From contig OZ251254.1 of the NCBI GenBank assembly GCA_965240325.2, positions 124,001-188,000 on the forward strand: a DNA stretch of 64,000 bases, written 5' to 3'. Shown one piece after another: positions 1 to 40,987 of the stretch. The position numbers and the translations under genes are program-made. Position 1 is the first letter of the stretch, and each line of letters starts with the position of its first letter. Source of the stretch: Rebecca billardiae RCC1528 (Eukaryota > Protista > Haptophyta). The notes below the pieces were generated by a model that ran no database searches, was not told the DNA's origin, and saw nothing but the letters and a program-made list of their open reading frames with translations.

Positions 1-1860
1 GCCCGCCGCCACCGCCGCCGCCAGCCCCGCCGCCGAGCCCTCCGCCGCCGCCTCCGTCGCCGCTGTCGGGCCAGCAGCCGCAGCCTCCGCCGAGTCCGCC
101 ACCACCCAACCCGCCCCCGCCTCCGCCGCCGTCGCCGCCACCGAGCCCGCCGCCATCGCCACCGCCACCGAGCCCGCCGCCACCGCCGCCGCCAGCCCCG
201 CCGCCGAGCCCTCCGCCACCGCCTCCGTCGCCGCTGTCGGGCCAGCAGCCGCAGCCTCCGCCGAGTCCGCCGCCACCCAACCCGCCCCCGCCTCCGCCGC
301 CGTCGCCGCCACCGAGCCCGCCGCCATCGCCACCGCCACCGAGCCCGCCGCCGAGCTCGCCGCCACCGCCACCACCATCCCCGCCGCCAAGCTCGCCACC
401 GCCACCGCCACCGAGCCCGCCACCCAGCTCGCCGCCACCGCCGCCGCCATCACCGCCGCCAAGCTCACCACCGCCGCCGCCGCCGAGCCCGCCGCCTAGC
501 TCGCCGCCGCCGCCGCCGCCGAGCCCGCCGCCGAGTTCGCCGCCGCCGCCGCCACCGAGCCCGCCACCAAGCTCGCCACCACCGCCGCCGCCAAGCCCGC
601 CACCCAGCTCGCCACCGCCACCACCGCCGAGCCCGCCACCCAGCTCGCCGCCGCCGCCACCGCCGAGCCCGCCGCCGAGCTCGCCACCACCGCCGCCGCC
701 GAGCCCGCCGCCGAGCTCGCCGCCGCCGCCACCGCCGAGCCCGCCACCCAGCTCGCCACCGCCGCCACCACCGAGCCCGCCACCGAGCTCGCCGCCGCCG
801 CCGCCGCCGAGCCCGCCACCCAGCTCGCCACCGCCACCACCGCCGAGCCCGCCACCCAGCTCGCCGCCGCCGCCGCCGCCGAGCCCTCCTCCAAGCTCGC
901 CACCACCGCCGCCGCCGAGCCCGCCACCCAGCTCGCCACCACCGCCGCCGCCAAGTCCACCGCCGAGCTCGCCACCGCCGCCGCCGCCAAGTCCACCGCC
1001 GAGCTCGCCACCGCCGCCGCCGCCAAGCCCGCCACCCAGCTTGCCACCGCCGCCGCCACCGAGCCCGCCGCCGAGCTCGCCACCGCCGCCGCCGCCGAGC
1101 CCGCCGCCGAGCTCGCCGCCGCCGCCACCGCCGAGCCCGCCACCCAGCTCGCCGCCGCCGCCACCACCGAGCCCGCCACCGAGCTCGCCGCCGCCGCCGC
1201 CGCCGAGCCCGCCACCCAGCTCGCCACCGCCACCACCGCCGAGCCCGCCACCCAGCTCGCCACCGCCGCCGCCACCGAGCCCACCGCCCAGCTCGCCACC
1301 GCCGCCGCCGCCGAGCCCGCCGCCGAGCTCGCCGCCGCCGCCGCCGCCGAGCCCGCCACCCAGCTCGCCGCCGCCGCCGCCACCGAGCCCGCCGCCCAGC
1401 TCGCCACCGCCGCCGCCGCCGAGCCCGCCGCCGAGCTCGCCGCCGCCGCCACCGCCGAGCCCGCCGCCCAGCTCGCCACCGCCGCCGCCGCCGAGCCCGC
1501 CGCCGAGCTCGCCGCCGCCGCCACCGCCGAGCCCGCCACCCAGCTCGCCGCCGCCGCCACCACCGAGCCCGCCGCCGCCGCCGAGCCCACCACCAGCCTT
1601 GCCGCCTCCGCCGCGAGTCGATCCGCTCCCGCCACCCTCGCCGCCTTCGCCACCTCCGAGCCCGCCGCCCCCGAGCTCGCCGCCGCCGCCGCCACCACCG
1701 AGCCCGCCGCCATCACTGCCACCGAGCTCGCCGCCGCCGCCGCCACCGAGCCCACCGCCCTCACCGCCGCCGAGCTCGCCGCCGCCACCGCCGCCAAGCC
1801 CATCTCCAAGCTCGCCACCACCGCCTCCGCCGAGCCCGCCGCCGAGCCCGCCACCCCCGC
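1..1860 (+). repeat. Coding tandem repeat encoding (SPPPSSPPPPPP)n; second Pro-rich block at 4515-5045
   Basis: Degenerate ~36-bp units of the type gagcccgccgccgagctcgccgccgccgccgccgcc. Confidence 0.9.
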
Positions 1861-4800
1861 GCATGGGCTGCACCGACCCGTCCGCCGACAACTACGACTC
1901 GCTTGCCGTCGTGCTCGCGCCGGGCGAGTGCTTCTACGCCGTCCTGGGCTGCACCGACTCGACCGCCAAGAACTACCGCGCGGCCGCCAACACGGACGAC
2001 GGCTCGTGCGTGTCCTTCGTCCGCGGCTGCACGGCGAGCCGCGCGACCAACTACGACGTGTCTGCGAACACGGACGACGGCAGCTGCACGTACGCCATCC
2101 TCGGCTGCACCGACTCGACCGCGCTCAACTTCAACTCGGTCGCCAACACGGACGACGGCAGCTGCGTCCAGCCCGTCCCGGGCTGCACCGCCGCGGTCGC
2201 GCTCAACTTCCTCTCCACGGCCAACGTGGAGGACGGCAGCTGCGTGTACCCGGTGCTCGGCTGCACCGACTCGAGCGCGATCAACTACAACGCGGCGGCG
2301 AACTCGGATGACGGCGGCTGCATCCCCACCGTGCCCGGCTGCACGGCCGTGAGCGCGCTCAACTACAACTCGGCCGCGACGCTCGACGACGGCGGCTGCG
2401 TCTTCGCGGTGCTCGGCTGCACCGACCCGCTCAGCCCGAGCTACTCGCCCTCGGCGAACACGGACGACGGCAGCTGCGAGTACCCCGGCTGCACCAACTC
2501 CGAGGCCGTCAACTTCGACCCGACCGCCACGCGCACCGACTTCTCGTGCGTCGCGCACGTCGACGGCTGCGTCGACTCGACCGCCGTCAACTACATCGCC
2601 CCGGCCACGCGCCAGCCGGCCACTGTCAGCTGCCAGTACGCGGGCTGCACCAACAGCCTCGCCGTGAACTACGACCCGAGCGCGACGCTGCTCGACTCGA
2701 GCTGCACGTTCACGCGCGCCTCGGGCCGCGCGTTCGTGCTCGGCTACCTCGGCGGCTGCGACGCGCTCGCCGACGCCGAGGTGCGCGACACGACGAGCGA
2801 CAACGGCGCGTACTCGCTCACGTACACGACCACCGCCTCCTTCGAGCTGCGCGCGGGCGCGGGCTGCACGGACCGGTACACGGACGAGGCGCTCGCGTTC
2901 GAGTTGAGCGCGCCCGCTGGCTCGACCGTGATCACGCCGCTCACCACCGTGCTCACGGCCATGGTCGAGGTGCACGGCCTCGGCACCGCCGCGGGCGCGA
3001 GCGGCGCGCGAGCGCGGCGCGCGAGCGAGCTCGAGAGTGCTGACCTCAGCGCTGCGAGCGAGCGCGCGCGCCGCGTGTTCCTCAACGGCGTCGACCCGGC
3101 GGTCGAGGTGGACGTGACCACGTACAACGCGATGGCCGGGCTGATCGCCGGCGAGGAGCTCGCCGCGCACGTGCTCGCCGCGCACAACGCCATCGGCAAC
3201 GCCGTCGCTGCTGTCACCTCCACGCTCGGCGGCGCGACGGCAGAGTCGACGATCGTCGCGCTCGGCGCGCTCACCGCCGCGGATGCAGTGTACGACGCGT
3301 CGCAGCTCGAGGCGCTGATGGCGGGCATGCTCACGGCGGATCCGGGGCTGGCTGACCCCGGGGCCGCCGCGCGAGCGAGCGCCGCGAGCGACGCCGTCGC
3401 CACGAGCGCAGTCTTCCGCACCGCGGTGGTGGACGGCACGCGCGAGCCGGACACGCCGAGCCGCAGCAAAGGCGTGAGTGCCGCGCAGTCCGGCCTCGGC
3501 GCGCTCGAGGCGGCGACGGGCGTGCCCGCACCGCTCGGCTGCACGGACGCGAGCGCGAGCAACTTCGACTCGTCGGCGGTGGTGGACGACGGCACGTGCG
3601 CCGTCGAGGGGTGCACCGCCTCGAGCGCCACGAACTACAACGTCAAGGCCACCGTCGACGACGGCTCGTGCGTCTTCCCCGTCCCCGGCTGCACCGTCTC
3701 GGCCGCGGCCAACTACGACTCGGGCGCCGAGCTGGACGACGGCAGCTGCACGTTCGACGTGGTCGGCTGCACGAGCAGCACGGCGATCAACTACCTCTCG
3801 GCGGCGAACGTGGACAGCGGCGAATGCATCGAGCCCGTGGCCGGCTGCACCTCGCCCAGCGCGAACAACTTCGACTCGGGCGCCACCGTTGACGACAGCA
3901 GCTGCGCGTTCGACGTCTCGGGCTGCACCGACACGGCGGCGGAGAACTTCAACGCCGCCGCGACGCTCGACGACGGCTCGTGCGTGTACGCGGGCTGCAC
4001 CAAGACGGCCGCGGAGAACTACGACTCGACGGCGGGGCTGAACAAGCCGGGCAGCTGCGTCTTCGCCGTGCGCGGCTGCATGAGCTCGGCCGCGGCCAAC
4101 TACCTCTCCGCCGCGACCGTGGACGACGGCACCTGCGTGTACCAGGGCTGCACGGACACGGCCGCGACCAACTTCAACCCGACGGCCACCTCGAACGACG
4201 GCACGTGCACCTACCCGCGCCCCGGCTGCACCAGCTCGTACGCGACCAACTTCGTGCCCAACGCGGACACGGACGACGGCACGTGCGTCTTCCCCGGCTG
4301 CACGGACACGGCCGCGACCAACTACGACTCGAGCGCCAACACGGACGACTTCAGCTGCGTGCTCCCCATCGTCGGCTGCACGGCGACGGACGCGCTCAAC
4401 TACGACTCGGAGGCGGACGTGGACAGCGGCACGTGCGTGGTCCCCGGCTGCACGGACAGCATCGCGACCAACTACAACTCGCGCGCCACGCTGGACAGCT
4501 CGGACTGCACCTACCCGCCGCCGCCCAGCCCGCCGCCCCTTCCGCCACCGAGCCCGCCGCCGCCGAGTCCGCCGCCGCCCAGCCCGCCGTCACCGCCGCC
4601 GCCCTCGTCGCCACCTTCGAGCCCGCCGCCGCCGCCACCGCCCTCGCCGCCGCCACCGCCGCTGCCACCGCCGCCCTCGCCGCCGCCAAGCCCGCCGCCG
4701 CCAAGCCCGCCGCCGCCCAGCCCGCCGCCCAGCCCGCCGCCCAGCCCGCTGCCGCCGAGCCCGCCGCCGAGCGGGCCACCCAGCCCGCCACCCAGCCCGC

Positions 4801-5821
4801 CACCGCCACCCTCGCCGCCGCCACCACCACCGCCCTCGCCGCCGCCGCCGCCGCCGCCATCGCCGCCGCCGCCGCCGCCCAGCCCGCCGCCCCCGCCGCC
4901 GCCTTCACCGCCGCCGCCGCCGCCCTCGCCGCCGCCGCCGCCCTCGCCACCACCGCCCTCCTTGCCTCCGCCTCCGAGCCCGCCTCCGCCGCCCTCGCCG
5001 CCGCCCTCGCCACCCTCGCCGCCGCCACCCTCGCCCTCGCCACCACTCGACGCCGCTACCGCGAGCACGAGCAGCACCGGTGGCTCGGGCACGTCCGACG
5101 GCGACGACGACAACAGCGGCAGTGGCGACAGTGGCAGAGGTGAAGCCTCGCCGACGGCCGACGGCTCGGCGGTTGGGGTAGTCGGCCGCTCGCTTGTCAT
5201 CGGCATCGGCGTGGCGGCGGGCACTGCGGTGCTCATGCTGTTCTGCGTCGGCATGTGCGTCTTTGTCCGGTCGATGTACTGGGTGCGTCGTGCGTGCCCA
5301 CTCCGCGCGAATGCCTGCGCGCGCGGGCTCGAGCTCGCACTCACCTGATCCCCGCGCCCGCCCCCGCGCGCGCCGTGCATCCGCAGGCGGACAAGCGGAA
5401 AGAAGAGCTCGCGGCTGCGCGGATCCAGGCCGCCCTACGTGGCCACATGGTGCGCCAGAACTCGCGCCGCACGGACACCAGCGCGTCGCTGTACGCCCAG
5501 AACTCGATCTTAGGGGCCATGGCGAGCTCGCTGCTCGGAAACGGCGGTGCGCCGCCGCAGGAGCGGCTGCGGCCACCATCGTCGCCCGAGGCGACGTCGA
5601 GCAGGCGCGAGACGCCGCCGCAGCCGTCAGTCTTTGATAGCGTGGCCGACGCCTTCGCCACGCCCTTCCGCCTCTTCTCCGGCGCCGGAGGCTCGAGCGC
5701 CCCGAGCAGAGGCGCCGCGCGCCCTTACGCGTCGCCGTACGGCGGCGCCGGCGACATGAACACGATCATGCCGTCGCGCGCAGGCGCCCGCCTGCCGAGC
5801 GGCGCTGGCGCTGCCGTGTAG
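1..5821 (+). CDS. 3' part of a giant type-I membrane surface protein: extensin-like Ser-Pro repeats, ~30 GCTDxxAxNYxxxAxxDDGSC repeats, TM helix, cytoplasmic IQ motif; 5' end lies outside the window
   Basis: The frame of ORF 1041..5348 appears open from position 3. TM segment LVIGIGVAAGTAVLMLFCVGMCVFV. A GT-AG intron at 5283-5386 joins YW to ADKRKEELAAARIQAALRGHMVRQ (IQ motif). Stop at 5821. Confidence 0.8.
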
Positions 5822-5945
5822 CTAGTCGTAGTCGTGACGACACGCTGCTGCTGCGTTGACGATATGCAGCCGTGTGTGTATTGAATAATTGAATATATGT
5901 GATATACGACGTCTAATAACTGCTATCGCATCTGCTGATCAGATA

Positions 5946-7811
5946 CCAGGTGGCCGCACGCCCTGCCTGAACCGGCAGCCGCGCTTTAGGGAAACACCAT
6001 CCGGGGGGCCGCCTTTCACTTAAGGACACGCGGGTGGGTGATTACTCGGAACACGTGAACCATGTCCTTTTCGGACATACGCACACGCAAGATCTTGGGT
6101 ACGCAGTCATACTATCTGAATCCTGAGCGCCCACGAGCCCTCTTGGGTCCATGATAATCTGCCTCGTCAGCGAGCGTCCAAAAGCGAATCCGCCGAAAGT
6201 TTTTGATTGAAAGCGAGCGCTTTCTCCAGACGAGACGGATTCCATTCTGGTCCGCTCGTTCCGAACCAAAAGGTCATGGATGCCGTTCCACGGCGCGCGC
6301 GCGGTTGGGGCGGGCGGCGAAGCGGTTTTGTCGGTGGGGTACGGTACAGTCTGTGGCGGGCCGGCGGTGGGTGAGCTACCTATGCAGTTTAGTTGCGCAC
6401 GCTCGCTCGACGGCAGACCGGCCATAATCATGCAAGTAGCAATAGCATCAAGCTGTATGGGTCCGCCACTCCGCCAAGTCAAGAAGTGCTAGTCCCTACT
6501 TAGTTACGCCGGCGGCCGGCGGGCACATATCATTCACTAGAGACGGCACCCTCGACGCCACTATTGGCCTTCCGTACCCCGCCCGCCGCAAGCCCGCCGC
6601 ACATCCGTGTATGATCGTGAGCGTTTCAGACGACAAGTGGACTAGGGCAGCAGCTGGCAAAACGCAGCGTCGATGGCTCACACGATCGCGTACCCGGTGG
6701 TGGTCGGAGTGCCGGTTGGGTTCACCATGCCCAACGGTCTCCCTTCGGGCCAGTCGGCCCGCACGAATGCGCCGCGACCAGCGCCATTCGCCTCGCAACC
6801 ATCGGCAGCATCGTTGCGCAACCGGGGCGGTCGCATTTGCCGGCGCAACATCTACCTGACCATCTCTGCAGTGCCCAACAACCATCCTCTCCTTTCCAAC
6901 CTTCCTGCAGTGGCGACACACTTGCTGGCGCCATTGAGGGGCAAACAGAAGGAGTTCGTCGTCTGCAAGGAGCCGCACGAGCACCCCAACGACCCTAGCC
7001 GCGCTTGGCACTTCCACGCCGTCATCGGATCGGAGATGAAGACGGACTGCCTGGTCACAGCCTTTGACCTCCCCCTCCAGGGCTGGGGCACGCTGCGAGC
7101 GTACCACGAGCCGATGGGCCCGACGAAGCGTGACCTGGCGAAGTGCATCCACTACTGCCAGAAGGAGGGGCCGTCCAACTTCATCATCAGCGCCAACTGG
7201 GCAACCATCCCAGAGCCGCTCGACGTGTGCGGCGTCGACTGGGCGCGCGCGCTGCACGCAGCACAGTCTGCAGACGAGGCAGCGGACATCTTGCAGTGCG
7301 AGCACCCGTCGATCTACTACCGCTACGGCCATGCCGTGCTCGCCATGATCCGCCACCGACACGGCAGCGGCGTCACGCCGCGCTTCGCCATGAGCTCGTT
7401 TGCGCGACTGCCGCTCGACCTCTCTGATGGGATGGCTGTCGTGCTCGCAGGTGGATCCGGCCACGGCAAGACGGAGTTCGGGCTGTCGCACTTCGAGAAC
7501 CCTCTTCTCGTGTCCGAGATGGACGACCTGAAGGATTTGACGGCTCGCAACGACGGTATCGTCTTCGACGACATGGATTTCACGCACATGACGGCCAAGG
7601 CAGTGATCAAGATGCTCGACCCCAACTACGAGCGATCGGTGCACACGCGCTACACGAATGCCAAGATCCCCGCAGACATGCCACGCGTGTTCACGACAAA
7701 TCTGGCCATGCAGTACCCCTACGAGCACATCTTCCCGCCCGGTCGCAACCTCGAGCAGCAGCGTGCGCTCAACCGCCGCTTCAAAGTCGTGACGGTCGAT
7801 GCCGACCTCTT
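5946..7811 (+). mobile_element. Rep-encoding element, copy 1 (right end missing)
   Basis: Starts TA|CCAGGTGG; matches copy 3 up to gccgacctctt, then jumps to host sequence. Confidence 0.7.
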
Positions 7812-7842
7812 ACAGCGGCAGTGGCGACAGTGGCAGAGGTGA
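6673..7842 (+). CDS. rep: CRESS-DNA-virus-type Rep (HUH endonuclease + SF3 helicase), copy 1; C-terminal tail replaced by host-derived sequence
   Basis: Motif I IYLTIS, motif II WHFHAVI, motif III HYCQKEG, Walker A GGSGHGKT, Walker B IVFDDM, motif C FTTN, Arg finger ALNRRF. Confidence 0.93.
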   Translation: MAHTIAYPVVVGVPVGFTMPNGLPSGQSARTNAPRPAPFASQPSAASLRNRGGRICRRNIYLTISAVPNNHPLLSNLPAVATHLLAPLRGKQKEFVVCKEPHEHPNDPSRAWHFHAVIGSEMKTDCLVTAFDLPLQGWGTLRAYHEPMGPTKRDLAKCIHYCQKEGPSNFIISANWATIPEPLDVCGVDWARALHAAQSADEAADILQCEHPSIYYRYGHAVLAMIRHRHGSGVTPRFAMSSFARLPLDLSDGMAVVLAGGSGHGKTEFGLSHFENPLLVSEMDDLKDLTARNDGIVFDDMDFTHMTAKAVIKMLDPNYERSVHTRYTNAKIPADMPRVFTTNLAMQYPYEHIFPPGRNLEQQRALNRRFKVVTVDADLLQRQWRQWQR

Positions 7843-8134
7843 AGCCTCGCCGACGGCCGACGGCTCGGCGGTTGGGGTAGTCGGCCGCTCGCTTGTCATC
7901 GGCATCGGCGTGGCGGCGGGCACTGCGGTGCTCATGCTGTTCTGCGTCGGCATGTGCGTCTTTGTCCGGTCGATGTACTGGGTGCGTCGTGCGTGCCCAC
8001 TCCGCGCGAATGCCTGCGCGCGCGGGCTCGAGCTCGCACTCACCTGATCCCCGCGCCCGCCCCCGCGCGCGCCGTGCATCCGCAGGCGGACAAGCGGAAA
8101 GAAGAGCTCGCGGCTGCGCGGATCCAGGCCGCCC

Positions 8135-8283
<149 letters not shown>

Positions 8284-9157
8284 CAGCACCGGTGGCTCGG
8301 GCACGTCCGACGGCGACGACGACAACAGCGGCAGTGGCGACAGTGGCAGAGGTGAAGCCTCGCCGACGGCCGACGGCTCGGCGGTTGGGGTAGTCGGCCG
8401 CTCGCTTGTCATCGGCATCGGCGTGGCGGCGGGCACTGCGGTGCTCATGCTGTTCTGCGTCGGCATGTGCGTCTTTGTCCGGTCGATGTACTGGGTGCGT
8501 CGTGCGTGCCCACTCCGCGCGAATGCCTGCGCGCGCGGGCTCGAGCTCGCACTCACCTGATCCCCGCGCCCGCCCCCGCGCGCGCCGTGCATCCGCAGGC
8601 GGACAAGCGGAAAGAAGAGCTCGCGGCTGCGCGGATCCAGGCCGCCCTACGTGGCCACATGGTGCGCCAGAACTCGCGCCGCACGGACACCAGCGCGTCG
8701 CTGTACGCCCAGAACTCGATCTTAGGGGCCATGGCGAGCTCGCTGCTCGGAAACGGCGGTGCGCCGCCGCAGGAGCGGCTGCGGCCACCATCGTCGCCCG
8801 AGGCGACGTCGAGCAGGCGCGAGACGCCGCCGCAGCCGTCAGTCTTTGATAGCGTGGCCGACGCCTTCGCCACGCCCTTCCGCCTCTTCTCCGGCGCCGG
8901 AGGCTCGAGCGCCCCGAGCAGAGGCGCCGCGCGCCCTTACGCGTCGCCGTACGGCGGCGCCGGCGACATGAACACGATCATGCCGTCGCGCGCAGGCGCC
9001 CGCCTGCCGAGCGGCGCTGGCGCTGCCGTGTAGCTAGTCGTAGTCGTGACGACACGCTGCTGCTGCGTTGACGATATGCAGCCGTGTGTGTATTGAATAA
9101 TTGAATATATGTGATATACGACGTCTAATAACTGCTATCGCATCTGCTGATCAGATA

Positions 9158-11023
9158 CCAGGTGGCCGCACGCCCTGCCTGAACCGGCAGCCGCGCTTTA
9201 GGGAAACACCATCCGGGGGGCCGCCTTTCACTTAAGGACACGCGGGTGGGTGATTACTCGGAACACGTGAACCATGTCCTTTTCGGACATACGCACACGC
9301 AAGATCTTGGGTACGCAGTCATACTATCTGAATCCTGAGCGCCCACGAGCCCTCTTGGGTCCATGATAATCTGCCTCGTCAGCGAGCGTCCAAAAGCGAA
9401 TCCGCCGAAAGTTTTTGATTGAAAGCGAGCGCTTTCTCCAGACGAGACGGATTCCATTCTGGTCCGCTCGTTCCGAACCAAAAGGTCATGGATGCCGTTC
9501 CACGGCGCGCGCGCGGTTGGGGCGGGCGGCGAAGCGGTTTTGTCGGTGGGGTACGGTACAGTCTGTGGCGGGCCGGCGGTGGGTGAGCTACCTATGCAGT
9601 TTAGTTGCGCACGCTCGCTCGACGGCAGACCGGCCATAATCATGCAAGTAGCAATAGCATCAAGCTGTATGGGTCCGCCACTCCGCCAAGTCAAGAAGTG
9701 CTAGTCCCTACTTAGTTACGCCGGCGGCCGGCGGGCACATATCATTCACTAGAGACGGCACCCTCGACGCCACTATTGGCCTTCCGTACCCCGCCCGCCG
9801 CAAGCCCGCCGCACATCCGTGTATGATCGTGAGCGTTTCAGACGACAAGTGGACTAGGGCAGCAGCTGGCAAAACGCAGCGTCGATGGCTCACACGATCG
9901 CGTACCCGGTGGTGGTCGGAGTGCCGGTTGGGTTCACCATGCCCAACGGTCTCCCTTCGGGCCAGTCGGCCCGCACGAATGCGCCGCGACCAGCGCCATT
10001 CGCCTCGCAACCATCGGCAGCATCGTTGCGCAACCGGGGCGGTCGCATTTGCCGGCGCAACATCTACCTGACCATCTCTGCAGTGCCCAACAACCATCCT
10101 CTCCTTTCCAACCTTCCTGCAGTGGCGACACACTTGCTGGCGCCATTGAGGGGCAAACAGAAGGAGTTCGTCGTCTGCAAGGAGCCGCACGAGCACCCCA
10201 ACGACCCTAGCCGCGCTTGGCACTTCCACGCCGTCATCGGATCGGAGATGAAGACGGACTGCCTGGTCACAGCCTTTGACCTCCCCCTCCAGGGCTGGGG
10301 CACGCTGCGAGCGTACCACGAGCCGATGGGCCCGACGAAGCGTGACCTGGCGAAGTGCATCCACTACTGCCAGAAGGAGGGGCCGTCCAACTTCATCATC
10401 AGCGCCAACTGGGCAACCATCCCAGAGCCGCTCGACGTGTGCGGCGTCGACTGGGCGCGCGCGCTGCACGCAGCACAGTCTGCAGACGAGGCAGCGGACA
10501 TCTTGCAGTGCGAGCACCCGTCGATCTACTACCGCTACGGCCATGCCGTGCTCGCCATGATCCGCCACCGACACGGCAGCGGCGTCACGCCGCGCTTCGC
10601 CATGAGCTCGTTTGCGCGACTGCCGCTCGACCTCTCTGATGGGATGGCTGTCGTGCTCGCAGGTGGATCCGGCCACGGCAAGACGGAGTTCGGGCTGTCG
10701 CACTTCGAGAACCCTCTTCTCGTGTCCGAGATGGACGACCTGAAGGATTTGACGGCTCGCAACGACGGTATCGTCTTCGACGACATGGATTTCACGCACA
10801 TGACGGCCAAGGCAGTGATCAAGATGCTCGACCCCAACTACGAGCGATCGGTGCACACGCGCTACACGAATGCCAAGATCCCCGCAGACATGCCACGCGT
10901 GTTCACGACAAATCTGGCCATGCAGTACCCCTACGAGCACATCTTCCCGCCCGGTCGCAACCTCGAGCAGCAGCGTGCGCTCAACCGCCGCTTCAAAGTC
11001 GTGACGGTCGATGCCGACCTCTT
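9158..11023 (+). mobile_element. Rep-encoding element, copy 2 (right end missing)
   Basis: Matches copy 1 at offset 3212. Confidence 0.7.
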
Positions 11024-11054
11024 ACAGCGGCAGTGGCGACAGTGGCAGAGGTGA
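9885..11054 (+). CDS. rep: CRESS-type Rep, copy 2
   Basis: Translation identical to copy 1. Confidence 0.93.
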   Translation: MAHTIAYPVVVGVPVGFTMPNGLPSGQSARTNAPRPAPFASQPSAASLRNRGGRICRRNIYLTISAVPNNHPLLSNLPAVATHLLAPLRGKQKEFVVCKEPHEHPNDPSRAWHFHAVIGSEMKTDCLVTAFDLPLQGWGTLRAYHEPMGPTKRDLAKCIHYCQKEGPSNFIISANWATIPEPLDVCGVDWARALHAAQSADEAADILQCEHPSIYYRYGHAVLAMIRHRHGSGVTPRFAMSSFARLPLDLSDGMAVVLAGGSGHGKTEFGLSHFENPLLVSEMDDLKDLTARNDGIVFDDMDFTHMTAKAVIKMLDPNYERSVHTRYTNAKIPADMPRVFTTNLAMQYPYEHIFPPGRNLEQQRALNRRFKVVTVDADLLQRQWRQWQR

Positions 11055-11346
11055 AGCCTCGCCGACGGCCGACGGCTCGGCGGTTGGGGTAGTCGGCCGC
11101 TCGCTTGTCATCGGCATCGGCGTGGCGGCGGGCACTGCGGTGCTCATGCTGTTCTGCGTCGGCATGTGCGTCTTTGTCCGGTCGATGTACTGGGTGCGTC
11201 GTGCGTGCCCACTCCGCGCGAATGCCTGCGCGCGCGGGCTCGAGCTCGCACTCACCTGATCCCCGCGCCCGCCCCCGCGCGCGCCGTGCATCCGCAGGCG
11301 GACAAGCGGAAAGAAGAGCTCGCGGCTGCGCGGATCCAGGCCGCCC

Positions 11347-11561
<215 letters not shown>

Positions 11562-12435
11562 CAGCACCGGTGGCTCGGGCACGTCCGACGGCGACGACGA
11601 CAACAGCGGCAGTGGCGACAGTGGCAGAGGTGAAGCCTCGCCGACGGCCGACGGCTCGGCGGTTGGGGTAGTCGGCCGCTCGCTTGTCATCGGCATCGGC
11701 GTGGCGGCGGGCACTGCGGTGCTCATGCTGTTCTGCGTCGGCATGTGCGTCTTTGTCCGGTCGATGTACTGGGTGCGTCGTGCGTGCCCACTCCGCGCGA
11801 ATGCCTGCGCGCGCGGGCTCGAGCTCGCACTCACCTGATCCCCGCGCCCGCCCCCGCGCGCGCCGTGCATCCGCAGGCGGACAAGCGGAAAGAAGAGCTC
11901 GCGGCTGCGCGGATCCAGGCCGCCCTACGTGGCCACATGGTGCGCCAGAACTCGCGCCGCACGGACACCAGCGCGTCGCTGTACGCCCAGAACTCGATCT
12001 TAGGGGCCATGGCGAGCTCGCTGCTCGGAAACGGCGGTGCGCCGCCGCAGGAGCGGCTGCGGCCACCATCGTCGCCCGAGGCGACGTCGAGCAGGCGCGA
12101 GACGCCGCCGCAGCCGTCAGTCTTTGATAGCGTGGCCGACGCCTTCGCCACGCCCTTCCGCCTCTTCTCCGGCGCCGGAGGCTCGAGCGCCCCGAGCAGA
12201 GGCGCCGCGCGCCCTTACGCGTCGCCGTACGGCGGCGCCGGCGACATGAACACGATCATGCCGTCGCGCGCAGGCGCCCGCCTGCCGAGCGGCGCTGGCG
12301 CTGCCGTGTAGCTAGTCGTAGTCGTGACGACACGCTGCTGCTGCGTTGACGATATGCAGCCGTGTGTGTATTGAATAATTGAATATATGTGATATACGAC
12401 GTCTAATAACTGCTATCGCATCTGCTGATCAGATA

Positions 12436-14927
12436 CCAGGTGGCCGCACGCCCTGCCTGAACCGGCAGCCGCGCTTTAGGGAAACACCATCCGGGGGGCC
12501 GCCTTTCACTTAAGGACACGCGGGTGGGTGATTACTCGGAACACGTGAACCATGTCCTTTTCGGACATACGCACACGCAAGATCTTGGGTACGCAGTCAT
12601 ACTATCTGAATCCTGAGCGCCCACGAGCCCTCTTGGGTCCATGATAATCTGCCTCGTCAGCGAGCGTCCAAAAGCGAATCCGCCGAAAGTTTTTGATTGA
12701 AAGCGAGCGCTTTCTCCAGACGAGACGGATTCCATTCTGGTCCGCTCGTTCCGAACCAAAAGGTCATGGATGCCGTTCCACGGCGCGCGCGCGGTTGGGG
12801 CGGGCGGCGAAGCGGTTTTGTCGGTGGGGTACGGTACAGTCTGTGGCGGGCCGGCGGTGGGTGAGCTACCTATGCAGTTTAGTTGCGCACGCTCGCTCGA
12901 CGGCAGACCGGCCATAATCATGCAAGTAGCAATAGCATCAAGCTGTATGGGTCCGCCACTCCGCCAAGTCAAGAAGTGCTAGTCCCTACTTAGTTACGCC
13001 GGCGGCCGGCGGGCACATATCATTCACTAGAGACGGCACCCTCGACGCCACTATTGGCCTTCCGTACCCCGCCCGCCGCAAGCCCGCCGCACATCCGTGT
13101 ATGATCGTGAGCGTTTCAGACGACAAGTGGACTAGGGCAGCAGCTGGCAAAACGCAGCGTCGATGGCTCACACGATCGCGTACCCGGTGGTGGTCGGAGT
13201 GCCGGTTGGGTTCACCATGCCCAACGGTCTCCCTTCGGGCCAGTCGGCCCGCACGAATGCGCCGCGACCAGCGCCATTCGCCTCGCAACCATCGGCAGCA
13301 TCGTTGCGCAACCGGGGCGGTCGCATTTGCCGGCGCAACATCTACCTGACCATCTCTGCAGTGCCCAACAACCATCCTCTCCTTTCCAACCTTCCTGCAG
13401 TGGCGACACACTTGCTGGCGCCATTGAGGGGCAAACAGAAGGAGTTCGTCGTCTGCAAGGAGCCGCACGAGCACCCCAACGACCCTAGCCGCGCTTGGCA
13501 CTTCCACGCCGTCATCGGATCGGAGATGAAGACGGACTGCCTGGTCACAGCCTTTGACCTCCCCCTCCAGGGCTGGGGCACGCTGCGAGCGTACCACGAG
13601 CCGATGGGCCCGACGAAGCGTGACCTGGCGAAGTGCATCCACTACTGCCAGAAGGAGGGGCCGTCCAACTTCATCATCAGCGCCAACTGGGCAACCATCC
13701 CAGAGCCGCTCGACGTGTGCGGCGTCGACTGGGCGCGCGCGCTGCACGCAGCACAGTCTGCAGACGAGGCAGCGGACATCTTGCAGTGCGAGCACCCGTC
13801 GATCTACTACCGCTACGGCCATGCCGTGCTCGCCATGATCCGCCACCGACACGGCAGCGGCGTCACGCCGCGCTTCGCCATGAGCTCGTTTGCGCGACTG
13901 CCGCTCGACCTCTCTGATGGGATGGCTGTCGTGCTCGCAGGTGGATCCGGCCACGGCAAGACGGAGTTCGGGCTGTCGCACTTCGAGAACCCTCTTCTCG
14001 TGTCCGAGATGGACGACCTGAAGGATTTGACGGCTCGCAACGACGGTATCGTCTTCGACGACATGGATTTCACGCACATGACGGCCAAGGCCGTGATCAA
14101 GATGCTCGACCCCAACTACGAGCGATCGGTGCACACGCGCTACACGAATGCCAAGATCCCCGCAGACATGCCACGCGTGTTCACGACAAATCTGGCCATG
14201 CAGTACCCCTACGAGCACATCTTCCCGCCCGGTCGCAACCTCGAGCAGCAGCGTGCGCTCAACCGCCGCTTCAAAGTCGTGACGGTCGATGCCGACCTCT
14301 TTGCGGCGGCTCCCGCCGCCGGCGCGTCAGCGGCTGCCGTGCAGACGTGAGCCATCAGCAAGCGTGCGTCGGTGCATAGCCGCAAGATGCCCTGCTCAGC
14401 CCAGCTGAGCTGCTCAGACTGGCTTGACCCTCACGCTAGTGCCAGGCGGCCTGGCGGTGAGGCGCCGCGGCAGCGGGCCGCCTTTTCGTCAGCGGACTCA
14501 GCTGCGGCCCCGCCCTCTCTCGAGCGGCTTGCGGCGAGGGCGAGAACAGCGGTGAAACTGAAAACATGGGTTTCCTCGGGCCAATCAGGTTAGCGCAAAC
14601 ACACCGCGCAGCCTGAATGCGTTGAGAGGAGCTAGTACACCGACCCTGAATAGCCCTATGGACGAACTCGTTTTGCGGATGATGGAGGCCCCCAAGATTC
14701 CGCCGATGATTCGGCACGATTAGGGAAGCATGCAAGCGTCCAACCGGTACAACATAAGAAGCCGCTGAGAAGTCTAGGCTCAAAAATGACCATAAGCCCC
14801 AATCGCGGGGCGTACGGTTGCGTGTGTTCGACAACTTGACCCTGAAATCAATTGGAGACCGGGTAGAGCGGTCTAAGGCGCGGCCGGCGTCAGACCGCCG
14901 ACTCACGCACATGACTTCTCCACCTGG
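12436..14927 (+). mobile_element. Complete Rep-encoding element, copy 3 (2492 bp, short imperfect TIRs, TA on both sides)
   Basis: TA|CCAGGTGG at 12434-12443 and CCACCTGG|TA at 14920-14929. Shared subterminal CTGA..CCGG..CCGCGC(T/C)TTAG in inverted orientation. AT-rich flanks on both sides. Confidence 0.65.
13163..14350 (+). CDS. rep: CRESS-type Rep, copy 3 (full length, 395 aa)
   Basis: All HUH and SF3 motifs intact; native C-terminus FAAAPAAGASAAAVQT. Confidence 0.94.
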   Translation: MAHTIAYPVVVGVPVGFTMPNGLPSGQSARTNAPRPAPFASQPSAASLRNRGGRICRRNIYLTISAVPNNHPLLSNLPAVATHLLAPLRGKQKEFVVCKEPHEHPNDPSRAWHFHAVIGSEMKTDCLVTAFDLPLQGWGTLRAYHEPMGPTKRDLAKCIHYCQKEGPSNFIISANWATIPEPLDVCGVDWARALHAAQSADEAADILQCEHPSIYYRYGHAVLAMIRHRHGSGVTPRFAMSSFARLPLDLSDGMAVVLAGGSGHGKTEFGLSHFENPLLVSEMDDLKDLTARNDGIVFDDMDFTHMTAKAVIKMLDPNYERSVHTRYTNAKIPADMPRVFTTNLAMQYPYEHIFPPGRNLEQQRALNRRFKVVTVDADLFAAAPAAGASAAAVQT

Positions 14928-15825
14928 TAATATAGAATATGACGATGCGATGCTCATATATATATATATGAACAGCTGATATATGATGATGATTATTTAC
15001 ATCATATATATATATATATATTATTTACTCACAATATACCATGAAAAGTCGACGGGGTAGCCGTTACCGAATCGGAGGCGCTCCAATAGGAGGCGTAGGG
15101 TGTTCACCCGCCGTGAGCGCACTAATAAGCGATATGACGATGCGATGCTCATGGCGCACGCCCCCCCCGAAAGGTCTGAGCGTGAGCGAAAGCCGGGGGG
15201 GGCGGCGCACGTGCTCCGCAAAATCAAAAAAGAGGATGCGCGCAGGATTTGGGGGGATTTTTGTAGGTGGATTTAGGTGTGAAACCGAGCATTTGAGTCC
15301 ATTTCGCTGCTCATGATTGCGTTTGTATGGTGCGCCAGAACTCGCGCCGCACGGACACCAGCGCGTCGCTGTACGCCCAGAACTCGATCTTAGGGGCCAT
15401 GGCGAGCTCGCTGCTCGGAAACGGCGGTGCGCCGCCGCAGGAGCGGCTGCGGCCACCATCGTCGCCCGAGGCGACGTCGAGCAGGCGCGAGACGCCGCCG
15501 CAGCCGTCAGTCTTTGATAGCGTGGCCGACGCCTTCGCCACGCCCTTCCGCCTCTTCTCCGGCGCCGGAGGCTCGAGCGCCCCGAGCAGAGGCGCCGCGC
15601 GCCCTTACGCGTCGCCGTACGGCGGCGCCGGCGACATGAACACGATCATGCCGTCGCGCGCAGGCGCCCGCCTGCCGAGCGGCGCTGGCGCTGCCGTGTA
15701 GCTAGTCGTAGTCGTGACGACACGCTGCTGCTGCGTTGACGATATGCAGCCGTGTGTGTATTGAATAATTGAATATATGTGATATACGACGTCTAATAAC
15801 TGCTATCGCATCTGCTGATCAGATA

Positions 15826-18317
15826 CCAGGTGGCCGCACGCCCTGCCTGAACCGGCAGCCGCGCTTTAGGGAAACACCATCCGGGGGGCCGCCTTTCACT
15901 TAAGGACACGCGGGTGGGTGATTACTCGGAACACGTGAACCATGTCCTTTTCGGACATACGCACACGCAAGATCTTGGGTACGCAGTCATACTATCTGAA
16001 TCCTGAGCGCCCACGAGCCCTCTTGGGTCCATGATAATCTGCCTCGTCAGCGAGCGTCCAAAAGCGAATCCGCCGAAAGTTTTTGATTGAAAGCGAGCGC
16101 TTTCTCCAGACGAGACGGATTCCATTCTGGTCCGCTCGTTCCGAACCAAAAGGTCATGGATGCCGTTCCACGGCGCGCGCGCGGTTGGGGCGGGCGGCGA
16201 AGCGGTTTTGTCGGTGGGGTACGGTACAGTCTGTGGCGGGCCGGCGGTGGGTGAGCTACCTATGCAGTTTAGTTGCGCACGCTCGCTCGACGGCAGACCG
16301 GCCATAATCATGCAAGTAGCAATAGCATCAAGCTGTATGGGTCCGCCACTCCGCCAAGTCAAGAAGTGCTAGTCCCTACTTAGTTACGCCGGCGGCCGGC
16401 GGGCACATATCATTCACTAGAGACGGCACCCTCGACGCCACTATTGGCCTTCCGTACCCCGCCCGCCGCAAGCCCGCCGCACATCCGTGTATGATCGTGA
16501 GCGTTTCAGACGACAAGTGGACTAGGGCAGCAGCTGGCAAAACGCAGCGTCGATGGCTCACACGATCGCGTACCCGGTGGTGGTCGGAGTGCCGGTTGGG
16601 TTCACCATGCCCAACGGTCTCCCTTCGGGCCAGTCGGCCCGCACGAATGCGCCGCGACCAGCGCCATTCGCCTCGCAACCATCGGCAGCATCGTTGCGCA
16701 ACCGGGGCGGTCGCATTTGCCGGCGCAACATCTACCTGACCATCTCTGCAGTGCCCAACAACCATCCTCTCCTTTCCAACCTTCCTGCAGTGGCGACACA
16801 CTTGCTGGCGCCATTGAGGGGCAAACAGAAGGAGTTCGTCGTCTGCAAGGAGCCGCACGAGCACCCCAACGACCCTAGCCGCGCTTGGCACTTCCACGCC
16901 GTCATCGGATCGGAGATGAAGACGGACTGCCTGGTCACAGCCTTTGACCTCCCCCTCCAGGGCTGGGGCACGCTGCGAGCGTACCACGAGCCGATGGGCC
17001 CGACGAAGCGTGACCTGGCGAAGTGCATCCACTACTGCCAGAAGGAGGGGCCGTCCAACTTCATCATCAGCGCCAACTGGGCAACCATCCCAGAGCCGCT
17101 CGACGTGTGCGGCGTCGACTGGGCGCGCGCGCTGCACGCAGCACAGTCTGCAGACGAGGCAGCGGACATCTTGCAGTGCGAGCACCCGTCGATCTACTAC
17201 CGCTACGGCCATGCCGTGCTCGCCATGATCCGCCACCGACACGGCAGCGGCGTCACGCCGCGCTTCGCCATGAGCTCGTTTGCGCGACTGCCGCTCGACC
17301 TCTCTGATGGGATGGCTGTCGTGCTCGCAGGTGGATCCGGCCACGGCAAGACGGAGTTCGGGCTGTCGCACTTCGAGAACCCTCTTCTCGTGTCCGAGAT
17401 GGACGACCTGAAGGATTTGACGGCTCGCAACGACGGTATCGTCTTCGACGACATGGATTTCACGCACATGACGGCCAAGGCCGTGATCAAGATGCTCGAC
17501 CCCAACTACGAGCGATCGGTGCACACGCGCTACACGAATGCCAAGATCCCCGCAGACATGCCACGCGTGTTCACGACAAATCTGGCCATGCAGTACCCCT
17601 ACGAGCACATCTTCCCGCCCGGTCGCAACCTCGAGCAGCAGCGTGCGCTCAACCGCCGCTTCAAAGTCGTGACGGTCGATGCCGACCTCTTTGCGGCGGC
17701 TCCCGCCGCCGGCGCGTCAGCGGCTGCCGTGCAGACGTGAGCCATCAGCAAGCGTGCGTCGGTGCATAGCCGCAAGATGCCCTGCTCAGCCCAGCTGAGC
17801 TGCTCAGACTGGCTTGACCCTCACGCTAGTGCCAGGCGGCCTGGCGGTGAGGCGCCGCGGCAGCGGGCCGCCTTTTCGTCAGCGGACTCAGCTGCGGCCC
17901 CGCCCTCTCTCGAGCGGCTTGCGGCGAGGGCGAGAACAGCGGTGAAACTGAAAACATGGGTTTCCTCGGGCCAATCAGGTTAGCGCAAACACACCGCGCA
18001 GCCTGAATGCGTTGAGAGGAGCTAGTACACCGACCCTGAATAGCCCTATGGACGAACTCGTTTTGCGGATGATGGAGGCCCCCAAGATTCCGCCGATGAT
18101 TCGGCACGATTAGGGAAGCATGCAAGCGTCCAACCGGTACAACATAAGAAGCCGCTGAGAAGTCTAGGCTCAAAAATGACCATAAGCCCCAATCGCGGGG
18201 CGTACGGTTGCGTGTGTTCGACAACTTGACCCTGAAATCAATTGGAGACCGGGTAGAGCGGTCTAAGGCGCGGCCGGCGTCAGACCGCCGACTCACGCAC
18301 ATGACTTCTCCACCTGG
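15826..18317 (+). mobile_element. Complete Rep-encoding element, copy 4
   Basis: Matches copy 3 at offset 3390. Confidence 0.65.
16553..17740 (+). CDS. rep: CRESS-type Rep, copy 4 (full length)
   Basis: Translation identical to copy 3. Confidence 0.94.
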   Translation: MAHTIAYPVVVGVPVGFTMPNGLPSGQSARTNAPRPAPFASQPSAASLRNRGGRICRRNIYLTISAVPNNHPLLSNLPAVATHLLAPLRGKQKEFVVCKEPHEHPNDPSRAWHFHAVIGSEMKTDCLVTAFDLPLQGWGTLRAYHEPMGPTKRDLAKCIHYCQKEGPSNFIISANWATIPEPLDVCGVDWARALHAAQSADEAADILQCEHPSIYYRYGHAVLAMIRHRHGSGVTPRFAMSSFARLPLDLSDGMAVVLAGGSGHGKTEFGLSHFENPLLVSEMDDLKDLTARNDGIVFDDMDFTHMTAKAVIKMLDPNYERSVHTRYTNAKIPADMPRVFTTNLAMQYPYEHIFPPGRNLEQQRALNRRFKVVTVDADLFAAAPAAGASAAAVQT

Positions 18318-18612
18318 TAATATAGAATATGACGATGCGATGCTCATATATATATATATGAACAGCTGATATATGATGATGATTATTTACATCATATATA
18401 TATATATATTATTTACTCACAATATACCATGAAAAGTCGACGGGGTAGCCGTTACCGAATCGGAGGCGCTCCAATAGGAGGCGTAGGGTGTTCACCCGCC
18501 GTGAGCGCACTAATAAGCGATATGACGATGCGATGCTCATGGCGCACGCCCCCCCCGAAAGGTCTGAGCGTGAGCGAAAGCCGGGGGGGGGCGGCGCACG
18601 TGCTCCGCAAAA

Positions 18613-19178
18613 TGTTGAGCTGACGCGGCCTGGGGCGCGCATCTCAGCAGATGGCGTCGCCGCTGGGACGTCAGGGCCGGCGCCGCACCAGGCGGGCCGG
18701 CGTCATCAGCTACGGAGCAGTGGCTGGCTGGCGGCGCGCGCGCGCGGCGCGCGCGGCGGCAGGAGCGCGGACGCGGCAGCGCGGACGCGGAGCGACACGG
18801 ACGCGGCGCGTGCGCGGGCGGTACGGCCCGGCGCAGCGCGACACGGTGACGTCGCACGGGCATGGCCCGGACGCCATCGTGGGAGTCCATCCGGATTTCC
18901 ACTTTCGGAAAAGTGGGAATCCGGCTGAGGGTGGACGGACGAGGACGTCCGGGAGTTACGTCGGGACGGGCGGTTTTCGGGAAGGTAACGCATTCCCCGG
19001 AGCCGGCCGCGACGTGGTCACCCCGCGACCAAAAGGTCGGCGGGAGGTTAGCTTGTCTTCGTAAAAGAGCGAAGGGAAGGAGGTTGCCTCTCGTGGTCAA
19101 CATTGACGACGCGCCCGAGGACGCGCCGGTGAGCTTTTAGCAGGGCTCGGGACGCTCGGAGCTCGCGTTTACCCAATA
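18613..19178 (+). repeat. 5' LTR
   Basis: TGTTGAGCTG...TTTACCCAATA; appears identical to the 3' LTR. Confidence 0.95.
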
Positions 19179-25071: not shown

Positions 25072-25107
25072 GCGGCGCAGCTCGCGGCTATGGCTGTCGA
25101 GGGGGGG

Positions 25108-25673
25108 TGTTGAGCTGACGCGGCCTGGGGCGCGCATCTCAGCAGATGGCGTCGCCGCTGGGACGTCAGGGCCGGCGCCGCACCAGGCGGGCCGGCGTCA
25201 TCAGCTACGGAGCAGTGGCTGGCTGGCGGCGCGCGCGCGCGGCGCGCGCGGCGGCAGGAGCGCGGACGCGGCAGCGCGGACGCGGAGCGACACGGACGCG
25301 GCGCGTGCGCGGGCGGTACGGCCCGGCGCAGCGCGACACGGTGACGTCGCACGGGCATGGCCCGGACGCCATCGTGGGAGTCCATCCGGATTTCCACTTT
25401 CGGAAAAGTGGGAATCCGGCTGAGGGTGGACGGACGAGGACGTCCGGGAGTTACGTCGGGACGGGCGGTTTTCGGGAAGGTAACGCATTCCCCGGAGCCG
25501 GCCGCGACGTGGTCACCCCGCGACCAAAAGGTCGGCGGGAGGTTAGCTTGTCTTCGTAAAAGAGCGAAGGGAAGGAGGTTGCCTCTCGTGGTCAACATTG
25601 ACGACGCGCCCGAGGACGCGCCGGTGAGCTTTTAGCAGGGCTCGGGACGCTCGGAGCTCGCGTTTACCCAATA
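25108..25673 (+). repeat. 3' LTR
   Basis: Direct repeat of 18613-19178. Confidence 0.95.
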
Positions 25674-29680: not shown

Positions 29681-30177
29681 GGGTGCTCGTCGCAGCCAGC
29701 AAGCGACGCTCGACAGGCGATGGGAGCGCGGTCACAGCCGCCACGACACTGTGCTGCCTCGCACCCCGGATTGGCGGACGCGCCGAAAGCAGCGAGCGAC
29801 CGCGAGGCGGCTCGCGCTGGATCCAGCCGAGGGGGCGTCATTCTCGTAACCAATCTCGCGCCGCGTGGCGCCTGCAGTCCCTTAATTGAAGTGCTGCGCT
29901 GCGCCGGCCTCGTTTGACGTTTCCGCTGCTCACGTATTGTCAGCAGGATACCCGTCCGCATACTTCACCGTACCGGTAGTCGTCGTCGCCCAACAACCCC
30001 GCGAGCCAAAAGCGCAACAGTACCAGTATTACCCTCATCCCGCACGCGTACGGTGATCAGTACTAGTCGTAGTGGCAGCGCTACCGCAGACTGCATGCAT
30101 CAGAATACAAGCAGTCCGGACAAGCAAGCACTGGCGCACCCTCGACCGGCAGAGCCAGAGGCGGCAGCTTTGCCCTA

Positions 30178-40714: not shown

Positions 40715-40987
40715 TACTACCGGCACCTGACTGAATCAAAAGTGAAAAGGACGAAGATATATACGCTAGCGTCCTTGGACTTTTATTGGACGGTTCCGGC
40801 GGTCGGACGGTCGCCTACGGCACCTGACGCCCAAACCCGAGGCGGGTCCCAAGGTTTTCGAGGTCGCTGAACGCATTTGCCGCTGGGGCCGAGGTCTGAA
40901 AACCAAGCGCGATTGCGCGGCGCGTTATTTTTCGTCGCGATTTTGTGCAGTCGGAAGGACGCTGCTAGTGACGGTATCTTCGGCCAA

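Follow-up and report, generated by a model that had tools for sequence, protein, structure and literature searches.

The window, by which we mean the whole 64-kb stretch of DNA analysed here, is entered from its left edge by a host gene whose long exon encodes Pro-rich arrays, Cys repeats of about 26 aa and, close to the exon end, a TM helix, and matches no Pfam family. The last exon, separated from it by a proposed intron, encodes a weak IQ motif (Pfam E=0.0025, 17.9 bits, under the 20.3 cut-off). A gene for a replication initiator protein (Rep) lies on the same strand, starting 851 bp 3' of the host stop codon, and the segment containing it has been multiplied into a tandem array. Besides Rep, its units contain the TM and weak IQ exons from the 3' end of that upstream gene, whose first copy remains whole. 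The chromosome that carries the array is GC-rich and that of a protist or alga; among RCC1 relatives the best reach 50% identity, those bearing a name belong to stramenopiles and a cryptophyte, and no result pointed to a human contig. The positions of all features are collected in Table 1.

Table 1. Features of the Rep array and its surroundings (positions are those of the window)
Feature	Position	Strand	Description
Host gene, long exon	1–5282	+	Enters from left window edge; ORF 1041–5348; GT donor, phase 0
Proposed intron	5283–5386	+	104 bp, GT..AG, phase 0; placed from frames of ORFs 1041–5348 and 5255–5821; splice model only
Host gene, last exon	5387–5821	+	Weak IQ motif, then low-complexity tail and stop; GC3 0.87
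Segment A	5067–5112		
Segment B	5113–5436		
Segment C	5437–5446		
Segment D	5447–7811		
Segment E	14302–15223		
Segment G1	15224–15326		
Unit 1	5067–8278	+	3212 bp; [A B C D][B][(TG)71.5]; B insert 7812–8135
Unit 2	8279–11556	+	3278 bp; [A B C D][B][(TG)104.5]; B insert 11024–11347
Unit 3	11557–15326	+	[A B C D E G1]; uninterrupted Copia target site CAAAA at 15219–15223
Unit 4	15327–18612	+	[D E]; stops at Copia target-site duplication
(TG)n fillers	8136–8278; 11348–11556		Pure TG
Rep copy 1	6673–7842	+	389-aa ORF; 3'-truncated by rearrangement junction; conserved core complete
Rep copy 2	9885–11054	+	389-aa ORF; condition as copy 1
Rep copy 3	13163–14350	+	Intact 395-aa ORF; HUH one-tyrosine endonuclease and SF3 helicase
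Rep copy 4	16553–17740	+	Intact 395-aa ORF, identical to copy 3
Hairpin/repeat-rich non-coding part of E	14928–15208		Candidate origin only; again in unit 4 at about 18318–18597; 30-nt direct repeats 14928–14957 and 15123–15152; AT hairpin 14979–15009; G/C hairpin 15154–15208
Second AT-hairpin module	27268–27343	+	95% identical copy, outside array
Copia-type LTR retrotransposon	18613–25673	+	Interrupts right edge of array; LTRs 18613–19178 and 25108–25673
Copia target-site duplication	18608–18612; 25674–25678		CAAAA
Parental G1	25679–25782	+	Downstream flank copied into unit 3; 100% over 109 bp including target site

The array spans positions 5067–18612 (13.5 kb) and consists of four units that are 99.96–100% identical; because the repeats are so long at such identity the array is far beyond chance, and it is confirmed as a genuine four-unit tandem array in the assembled sequence. 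Self-BLAST and direct reading agree on this, bearing out the tandem amplification, with host TM-IQ 3' exons copied along with Rep, that the initial annotation had described at these positions. The unit starts proposed there (5067, 5113 and 5447) are correct as positions. As to the unit ends, in units 1 and 2 the right limit lies within the tail of the Rep ORF, and in unit 3 it lies 976 bp beyond the Rep stop. The break at 5113 is real, but what starts there is a 324-bp insert and not a full unit. This insert is templated, being a copy of segment B present in units 1 and 2, and neither it nor the pure TG fillers of 143–209 bp figured in the initial annotation. Across the four copies of segment D there is a single substitution in 2365 bp, a synonymous third-position change (GCA/GCC) with A at 7602 and 10814 and C at 14092 and 17482, which groups copies 1 and 2 against copies 3 and 4 as previously noted. 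TG length is the only difference between units 1 and 2, and units 3 and 4 are distinguished by indels of one TA unit and of one G in a G-run. The 64-kb window contains no Ns.

The identification of the multiplied ORF as a Rep was also upheld. Copies 1 and 2 are free of stops and frameshifts, and Walker A, Walker B, motif C and the arginine finger are kept in all four copies along with the HUH and YxxK motifs. In an alignment of nine sequences the nuclease-domain residues H113 (HUH motif II) and Y161 and K164 (YxxK motif III) are invariant, as are the SF3 helicase residues G260, G265-K266-T267, G295-D300, N343 and R368-R369. The profile of this alignment matched Rep nuclease domains in PDB (E 6e-15 to 1e-7), and in Foldseek searches the AF2 model matched the geminivirus Rep nuclease domain (TM 0.71) and full-length vientovirus Rep (E 7e-9), as well as AAV Rep, E1 and PCV2 Rep. 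Named Reps were reached solely by alignment profile and fold search: a Pfam search with the Rep ORF of the window alone gave no match at E<=0.1, Viral_Rep and Gemini_AL1 included, a PDB sequence search with the single ORF gave none, and curated Pfam Rep families were found only in more distant relatives, P0004-6 (PF02407) and P0008 (PF00799). The ORF is a genuine CRESS-DNA-virus-type Rep with all catalytic motifs present, and the analysis demonstrates its identity and intactness as well as the anatomy of the array in which it lies. Its closest relatives, at 52% identity, are on contigs no longer than about 2.5 kb; about 30 relatives are on contigs of 0.5–2.5 kb and one further relative is on a contig of 4348 bp, close to twice 2170. 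The GC3 of Rep (0.82) resembles that of host genes. By tblastn, Rep had no further remnants in the 64-kb window and no match in bacterial plasmids, so nothing points to a plasmid as its source. Exact database look-ups with five proteins of the window returned no record, and two metagenome scans with 22–24-mers from the window returned no match.

No capsid gene lies beside Rep, and no coding periodicity was found outside Rep and the host exons. ORFs of 146 and 173 aa have a GC3 of about 0.6; the 173-aa antisense ORF was considered as a capsid gene and dropped for lack of any homologue or coding bias. The begomovirus origin nonamer (as printed in PMC5014472) had no match within one mismatch in the 64-kb window, Rfam and tRNA scans of the same 64 kb gave no matches, and no terminal direct repeats were found bracketing Rep. 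Two significant hairpins occur downstream of Rep, and the AT hairpin holds a repeated 9-mer ending in TAC. The hairpin-rich stretch of E to which they belong is the only one of its kind, and units 1 and 2 are without it.

The Copia-type element that interrupts the right edge of the array has LTRs of 566 bp that are 100% identical to each other, and it gave RVT_2 and zf-CCHC matches. Its empty site is preserved in unit 3; both the element and the empty site are missing from the initial annotation. Since unit 3 retains the empty target site, the duplication is demonstrably earlier than the Copia insertion. Explaining the array takes at least three duplication events, in agreement with the earlier view of a very recent local amplification in more than one round. 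Further recent structural changes, together with pure microsatellites of great length, occur in the same window, and the genome is therefore structurally dynamic.

Three junctions in the array are novel (D↓B, (TG)n↓A and G1↓D, the arrow marking the join). Their microhomology amounts to 0, 0 and 1 bp, within the 0–1 bp reported initially. All three join T to A (T↓A), two of them as T↓AC; under random breakpoints such uniformity has P ~3e-4, or ~1.3e-2 for any shared dinucleotide, for a pattern of n=3 that was noticed post hoc. T↓A is the scissile dinucleotide at canonical CRESS origins, and topoisomerase I likewise favours T at position -1. The six parental break contexts (donors T↓T, T↓A and T↓A; acceptors C↓A, A↓A and C↓A) have no full motif in common, and the ends differ between events, with three left ends and three donor ends, none of them shared. 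Two breakpoints of independent events lie 10 bp apart within a small palindrome: the break at the end of B, of parental context T↓AC and predicted unpaired probability 0.97, and the start of D. The hairpin predicted at this hot spot is no better than those of shuffled sequences. Location of break sites in predicted loops gave a mixed picture, with high values on the + strand at three of the six (background mean 0.45). G-quadruplexes were considered as the cause of the left-end clustering and dropped as weak, with only three short motifs at 4514–4798. That the left ends fall within 380 bp of one another is itself weak evidence; two of the three stem from one complex event.

We consider the most likely explanation, to which we give about even credence, to be ordinary duplication by template switching or end joining followed by unequal exchange, in which Rep and the host exons were passengers. 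The starting point would have been an endogenous, intact, Rep-only gene of the CRESS-DNA-virus type, with host-like codons, beside a gene for a host membrane protein; the chromosome segment containing the last two exons of this gene together with Rep was then amplified in place, very recently. Event 1 would have been a plain 3390-bp tandem duplication of D-E-G1, joined via 1 bp of microhomology, and event 2 a complex duplication of A-D, at the junction of which the 324-bp templated copy of B and the TG filler would have been acquired. Such a junction is the expected product of template switching during replication or of filler-adding end joining. Event 3, an unequal exchange between the resulting repeats, would have given one extra 3.2-kb unit, after which the TG tracts may have drifted to 71 and 104 units; Copia inserted later at the right edge, and the full-length host gene is unaffected. 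We infer both the mechanism, whether repair or replication, and the order of events 1 and 2.

This explanation accommodates three different junction types with no shared end and next to no microhomology, as well as the insert and filler at the complex junction; that units 1 and 2 differ in TG length alone is what homologous unequal exchange predicts, and the empty Copia site makes the history internally consistent. It is favoured, too, by the lack of an origin nonamer within one mismatch and of a capsid-like coding signal in the unit, and by the dynamic structure of the genome. For multi-copy endogenous Reps with similar flanks, a single integration and later segmental duplication have already been invoked (Liu et al., 2011; PMC3198968). 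It sits less easily with T↓A at every novel junction, with independent breakpoints 10 bp apart in a small palindrome and with the presence of Rep in every unit, its full catalytic core kept in all four copies, and its evidence comes from one locus. Alternatively, an expressed chromosomal Rep could cut single-stranded DNA at a degenerate T↓A(C) in exposed loops and join the ends, and either 3.2–3.4-kb circles recombining back into the locus or local re-replication would yield tandem units that always contain Rep and, by position, the host exons; we regard this as possible, if unlikely. The intact catalytic residues and a predicted fold matching full-length Rep structures, the host-like GC3, the improbability of uniform T↓A junctions under random breakage, the exposed T↓AC context of the B-end break with the start of D beside it, and the AT hairpin 3' of Rep with its 9-mer ending in TAC would all suit it, and there are precedents in the host/virus hybrid circles made by a geminivirus (PMC6293997) and in the proposal that Rep catalyses its own excision and invasion (Liu et al., 2011; PMC3198968). 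However, no nick end is constant and no full motif unites the parental breaks, precise joining by Rep would not give a 324-bp insert with pure TG filler, the hairpin region is missing from units 1 and 2 and its AT module also occurs outside the array, the hairpin at the hot spot does not surpass shuffles, and the T↓A pattern consists of three junctions spotted post hoc, with a T(-1) preference that topoisomerase I shares. That an active endogenous Rep with loose T↓A(C) cutting and joining gave circles or re-replication products that returned as tandem units seems to us doubtful. Rep nicking as the driver of the amplification, which the initial annotation had proposed, is a possible but less likely reading.

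It is improbable that the cell has only one or two units and that the assembler expanded the repeat or stacked haplotypes. Identity of 99.96–100% can be resolved by long reads only, and units 3 and 4 differ by indels of a kind typical of read error (one TA-repeat unit, one base of a G-run); against this, the three distinct junctions join non-homologous points and therefore could not have been created by an overlap assembler, the two TG tracts are of unequal length, the substitution groups units 1 and 2 against 3 and 4, and empty and filled Copia sites occur in adjacent units of a sequence free of Ns. A rolling-circle transposon of Helitron or Replitron type, with host exons captured by read-through and copies that are now adjacent insertions, is highly improbable. 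The Rep would in that case be encoded by the element, and Replitron-1 takes along a variable stretch of its downstream flank when it inserts (PMC10288648), but an SF3 helicase with one tyrosine fits neither RepHel nor the Replitron transposase, which has no helicase; the copies share flanks and occur strictly in tandem, and around Rep there are no terminal direct repeats nor, within 64 kb, other Rep fragments.

Host assignment is the hardest question for Rep-encoding viruses of this kind, and the locus links a eukaryotic host genome to a clade of putative Rep replicons of about 2.2 kb known so far from metagenomes alone. The joint copying of an endogenous Rep and host exons is, moreover, unusually recent here and fully resolved, with units one substitution apart and the order of events recorded in an empty retrotransposon site. 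Should the T↓A signature recur at other loci or in other strains, it would point to an endogenised viral nuclease reshaping host genes; should it fail elsewhere, the array would be a clean instance of ordinary segmental duplication that happened to include a viral gene. If Rep did drive the amplification, exons and genes would here be duplicated by the action of an endogenised virus gene, in a way distinct from that of Helitrons and Replitrons and observed only a handful of mutations after its start.

Helitron RepHel proteins exceed 1000 aa and combine a two-tyrosine HUH nuclease with a Pif1-like SF1 helicase; Helitron copies are dispersed, have conserved termini and a 3' hairpin, and insert at AT. 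Helitron gene capture resembles the present case in that a Rep-encoding element and host exon fragments are copied together, yet the analogy drawn in the initial annotation is not supported: the 395-aa protein has one motif III tyrosine and an SF3 helicase, with no second tyrosine and no Pif1-like helicase, and no Helitron termini are visible. Nor does transduction describe the fate of the exons, as all copies are local and in tandem within 64 kb and nothing has moved to another site. Duplications of the FoSTeS/MMBIR type show microhomology of 0–1 bp, a nearby templated insert, filler DNA and later growth by unequal exchange. The array has the first three and probably grew in the same way, whereas a pure TG filler of 143–209 bp and T↓A at each of its three junctions would be unusual for them. 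Such duplications have no site specificity, and the uniform T↓A and the breakpoints 10 bp apart speak for some site preference. [quoted passage not shown] A curtovirus-like geminivirus forms minicircles that are hybrids of host and virus (Catoni et al., 2018; PMC6293997): replication of this single-stranded DNA virus takes chromosomal DNA into small circles that are extrachromosomal and always contain the viral origin, whereas the copies described here are chromosomal. The endogenous geminivirus-like arrays of Nicotiana (GRD) and yam (EGV1) are also Rep-bearing, head-to-tail chromosomal repeats, of about 2.6–3.4 kb, but their unit is viral sequence with an origin stem-loop (PMC5014472), in contrast to units with host exons in each, no canonical origin found and ends that vary by event. 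Endogenous CRESS Reps (Liu et al., 2011, PMC3198968; Kinsella et al., 2020, PMC7493932) share with the present locus a chromosomal HUH and SF3 Rep and the lack of a capsid gene; what sets this locus apart from them is the presence of four full catalytic cores, separated by one substitution, in one resolved array with mapped junctions.

The stretch 5067-18612 consists of four tandem units, each carrying a Rep ORF together with 3' exons of the upstream host gene, and here self-comparison of the window and direct reading both confirmed the initial annotation. Between-unit identity is 99.96-100%. A single substitution, the synonymous A/C difference already recognized, separates the copies of segment D, and units 3 and 4 are further set apart by a single TA unit and by one G within a homopolymer. 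The three starts originally proposed (5067, 5113 and 5447) hold, but the one at 5113 belongs to an insert of 324 bp and not to a complete unit. The insert lies at a complex junction, where pure TG (143 and 209 bp), overlooked at first, is also present.

Segments (building blocks) and units of the array, with neighbouring features (window positions)
Feature	Position	Description
Segment A	5067-5112	
Segment B	5113-5436	
Segment C	5437-5446	
Segment D	5447-7811	
Segment E	14302-15223	
Segment G1	15224-15326	
Unit 1		[ABCD][B][(TG)71.5]
Unit 2		[ABCD][B][(TG)104.5]
Unit 3		[ABCD-E-G1]
Unit 4		[D-E]
Proposed host intron	5283-5386	104 bp, GT..AG, phase 0; splice model read by eye from sequence
Hairpin- and repeat-rich stretch downstream of Rep	14928-15208	two 30-nt direct repeats, AT hairpin, G/C hairpin
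Copia-type LTR retrotransposon	18613-25673	566-bp LTRs 100% identical; TSD CAAAA (5 bp); RVT_2 and zinc-knuckle matches

The right limit of the array, likewise missed initially, is the 5' LTR of a Copia element in which the gag (zinc knuckle) and pol (RVT_2) ORFs overlap and whose insertion looks very recent. Segment G1 is identical to the DNA directly past this element (25679-25782); in unit 3, therefore, the target site is still empty (15219-15223), and the D-E-G1 duplication predates the Copia insertion. Because this history is internally consistent, and because every novel junction (D to B, TG to A and G1 to D) connects non-homologous points, our data argue that the array is real and not a product of assembly.

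The host gene enters from the left edge of the window, with an ORF from 1041, and encodes proline-rich arrays, a TM helix and a 26-aa cysteine repeat without a Pfam match. In its ectodomain (1-5060) the proline arrays are long and of PPSPPP type, and the cysteine-containing repeat, with a 78-bp period, occurs more than 25 times. Past the proposed intron, and with the exons searched separately, the last exon matched IQ below threshold (E 0.0025); it ends with a stop at 5821, and Rep, on the same strand, starts 851 bp farther downstream. The host gene is complete in its first copy, and its extra copies are 3' fragments that lack a promoter.

The Rep ORF had no match in Pfam or in a single-sequence PDB search. 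A word search recovered eight relatives, including two at 52% identity and one at 36%, and more distant relatives bear Pfam Viral_Rep or Gemini_AL1. No aligned sequence, the window's Rep included, departs from the HUH histidine, the tyrosine and lysine of YxxK, Walker A, Walker B, motif C or the arginine pair. A profile of this alignment matches solved Rep nuclease domains (E down to 6e-15), and an AlphaFold model (pLDDT 76.5) matches a full-length vientovirus Rep (E 7e-9), Reps of geminiviruses, circoviruses and parvoviruses, and the E1 helicase of papillomavirus. On the strength of these motifs and matches, the ORF encodes a genuine CRESS-type Rep with one catalytic tyrosine and an SF3 helicase. 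This combination rules out membership of the Helitrons, to which the locus had been likened, and the helicase rules out that of the Replitrons, which have none (PMC10288648).

Two of the four Rep copies are whole; the others have each lost the 3' end to a rearrangement junction by one truncation. The ORF is 395 aa in units 3 and 4 and 389 aa in units 1 and 2, the relatives align through the conserved core of all four copies, and none of the four contains a stop, frameshift or insertion. Third-position GC (0.82) resembles that of host genes, unlike adjacent non-coding DNA. No capsid-like coding region was found in the unit, and the element is therefore Rep-only. Contigs bearing Rep relatives are short (about 30 at ≤~2.5 kb and another at 4348 bp), from which we infer that the relatives may be small replicons of ~2.2 kb.

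At least three events were needed to form the array, in agreement with the earlier proposal of more than one duplication round. In event 1, D-E-G1 would have been duplicated in simple tandem (3390 bp, 1 bp microhomology); event 2 would be a complex duplication of A-D, its junction gaining a templated B copy and TG filler; and event 3 would have supplied an extra copy of the 3.2-kb unit, for which no new junction is required and unequal exchange fits, with TG tract lengths changing afterwards. The SNP is compatible with event 1 or event 2 having come first. The initial annotation had attributed amplification to nicking or rolling-circle run-through by Rep, with left ends falling within 380 bp. 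Such clustering exists, yet its value as evidence is weak because two of the three left ends come from one complex event. A site-specific nick at an origin would leave at least one constant end, and different events share none (left ends 5067, 5113 and 5447; donor ends 7811, 5436 and 15326); the templated insert and TG filler are also unlike precise Rep joining. Since no end is common to the events, the clustering is weak and the genome is visibly unstable (five pure microsatellites reach 50-150 units, and the window also has two large, young inverted duplications and an identical-LTR insertion), we consider the most likely reading, at about an even chance, to be that ordinary replication or repair error made the array and Rep was a passenger. 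Liu et al. (2011) took the same view of multi-copy Rep endogenous viral elements with similar flanks.

Amplification by Rep action, which we regard as rather unlikely, finds support in the breakpoints, with T↓A (arrow, breakpoint) at 3/3 novel junctions between unique sequences and T↓AC at 2/3. T↓A is the scissile step of canonical CRESS origins. The begomovirus nonamer, as given in PMC5014472, has no match in the window with up to one mismatch. If breakpoints are sampled at random within one contiguous stretch (11557-15326), T↓A at three junctions has P ~3e-4, or ~1.3e-2 for any shared dinucleotide, but the pattern comprises three junctions only and was spotted post hoc. Topoisomerase I likewise prefers T at position -1. 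A small last-exon palindrome holds two breakpoints of independent events, the B end and the D start, at a distance of 10 bp, and the parental context of the B end is T↓AC, with a predicted unpaired probability of 0.97; however, folding of the palindrome is no stronger than that of shuffled sequences and the six parental break contexts have no full motif in common. The hairpin-rich stretch downstream of Rep could be a candidate origin: its AT hairpin (z -2.8/-3.3) bears in the loop a 9-mer found twice per unit, and its G/C hairpin has z -3.1. Nevertheless, this stretch is missing from units 1 and 2, and the AT-hairpin module recurs beyond the array.

This AT-rich module (~75 bp) lies at 14954-15026, ~18344-18414 and 27268-27343, with 95% identity between array and outside. 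It contains the 9-mer ATTATTTAC, for which chance predicts no occurrence in the window, and may represent a copy of an origin, a MITE-like piece or a module of host intergenic DNA. Between the downstream flank of the array and the outside module is a block of 80-84% GC (26050-27150) in which frames of 300+ aa stay open on each strand. The window belongs to a eukaryotic nuclear contig that does not resemble human DNA, has a GC content of 56-83% and no Ns, and contains RCC1, DHHC and homeodomain genes besides the Copia retrotransposon. A (GCT)151 array of 97% purity (46111-46565) falls within a long minus-strand ORF that bears a homeodomain. At 56246-58267 there is a foldback-like structure of 810-bp inverted arms (99.4% identical, 284-bp spacer), mostly a 10-mer array of ~38-40 units per arm, adjoining (GT)53; another inverted pair (52032-53560) has 593-bp arms, 98.7% identical and 343 bp apart. 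A ~283-bp repeat occurs three times at 38953-41414, one copy inverted, and flanks (AG)67 (40991-41125), and a 490-bp piece (30176-30668) recurs inverted at 40246-40716 with 88% identity; these repeats probably make up a small family of non-autonomous transposons.

A geminivirus is documented to make host/virus circles, but a chromosomal Rep is not. Although its units, unlike those of the tandem geminivirus-like arrays of Nicotiana and yam, include host exons and have no recognizable origin, the array resembles them in unit size and head-to-tail order. The locus, where local duplication has multiplied an endogenous CRESS Rep, is of a known kind.
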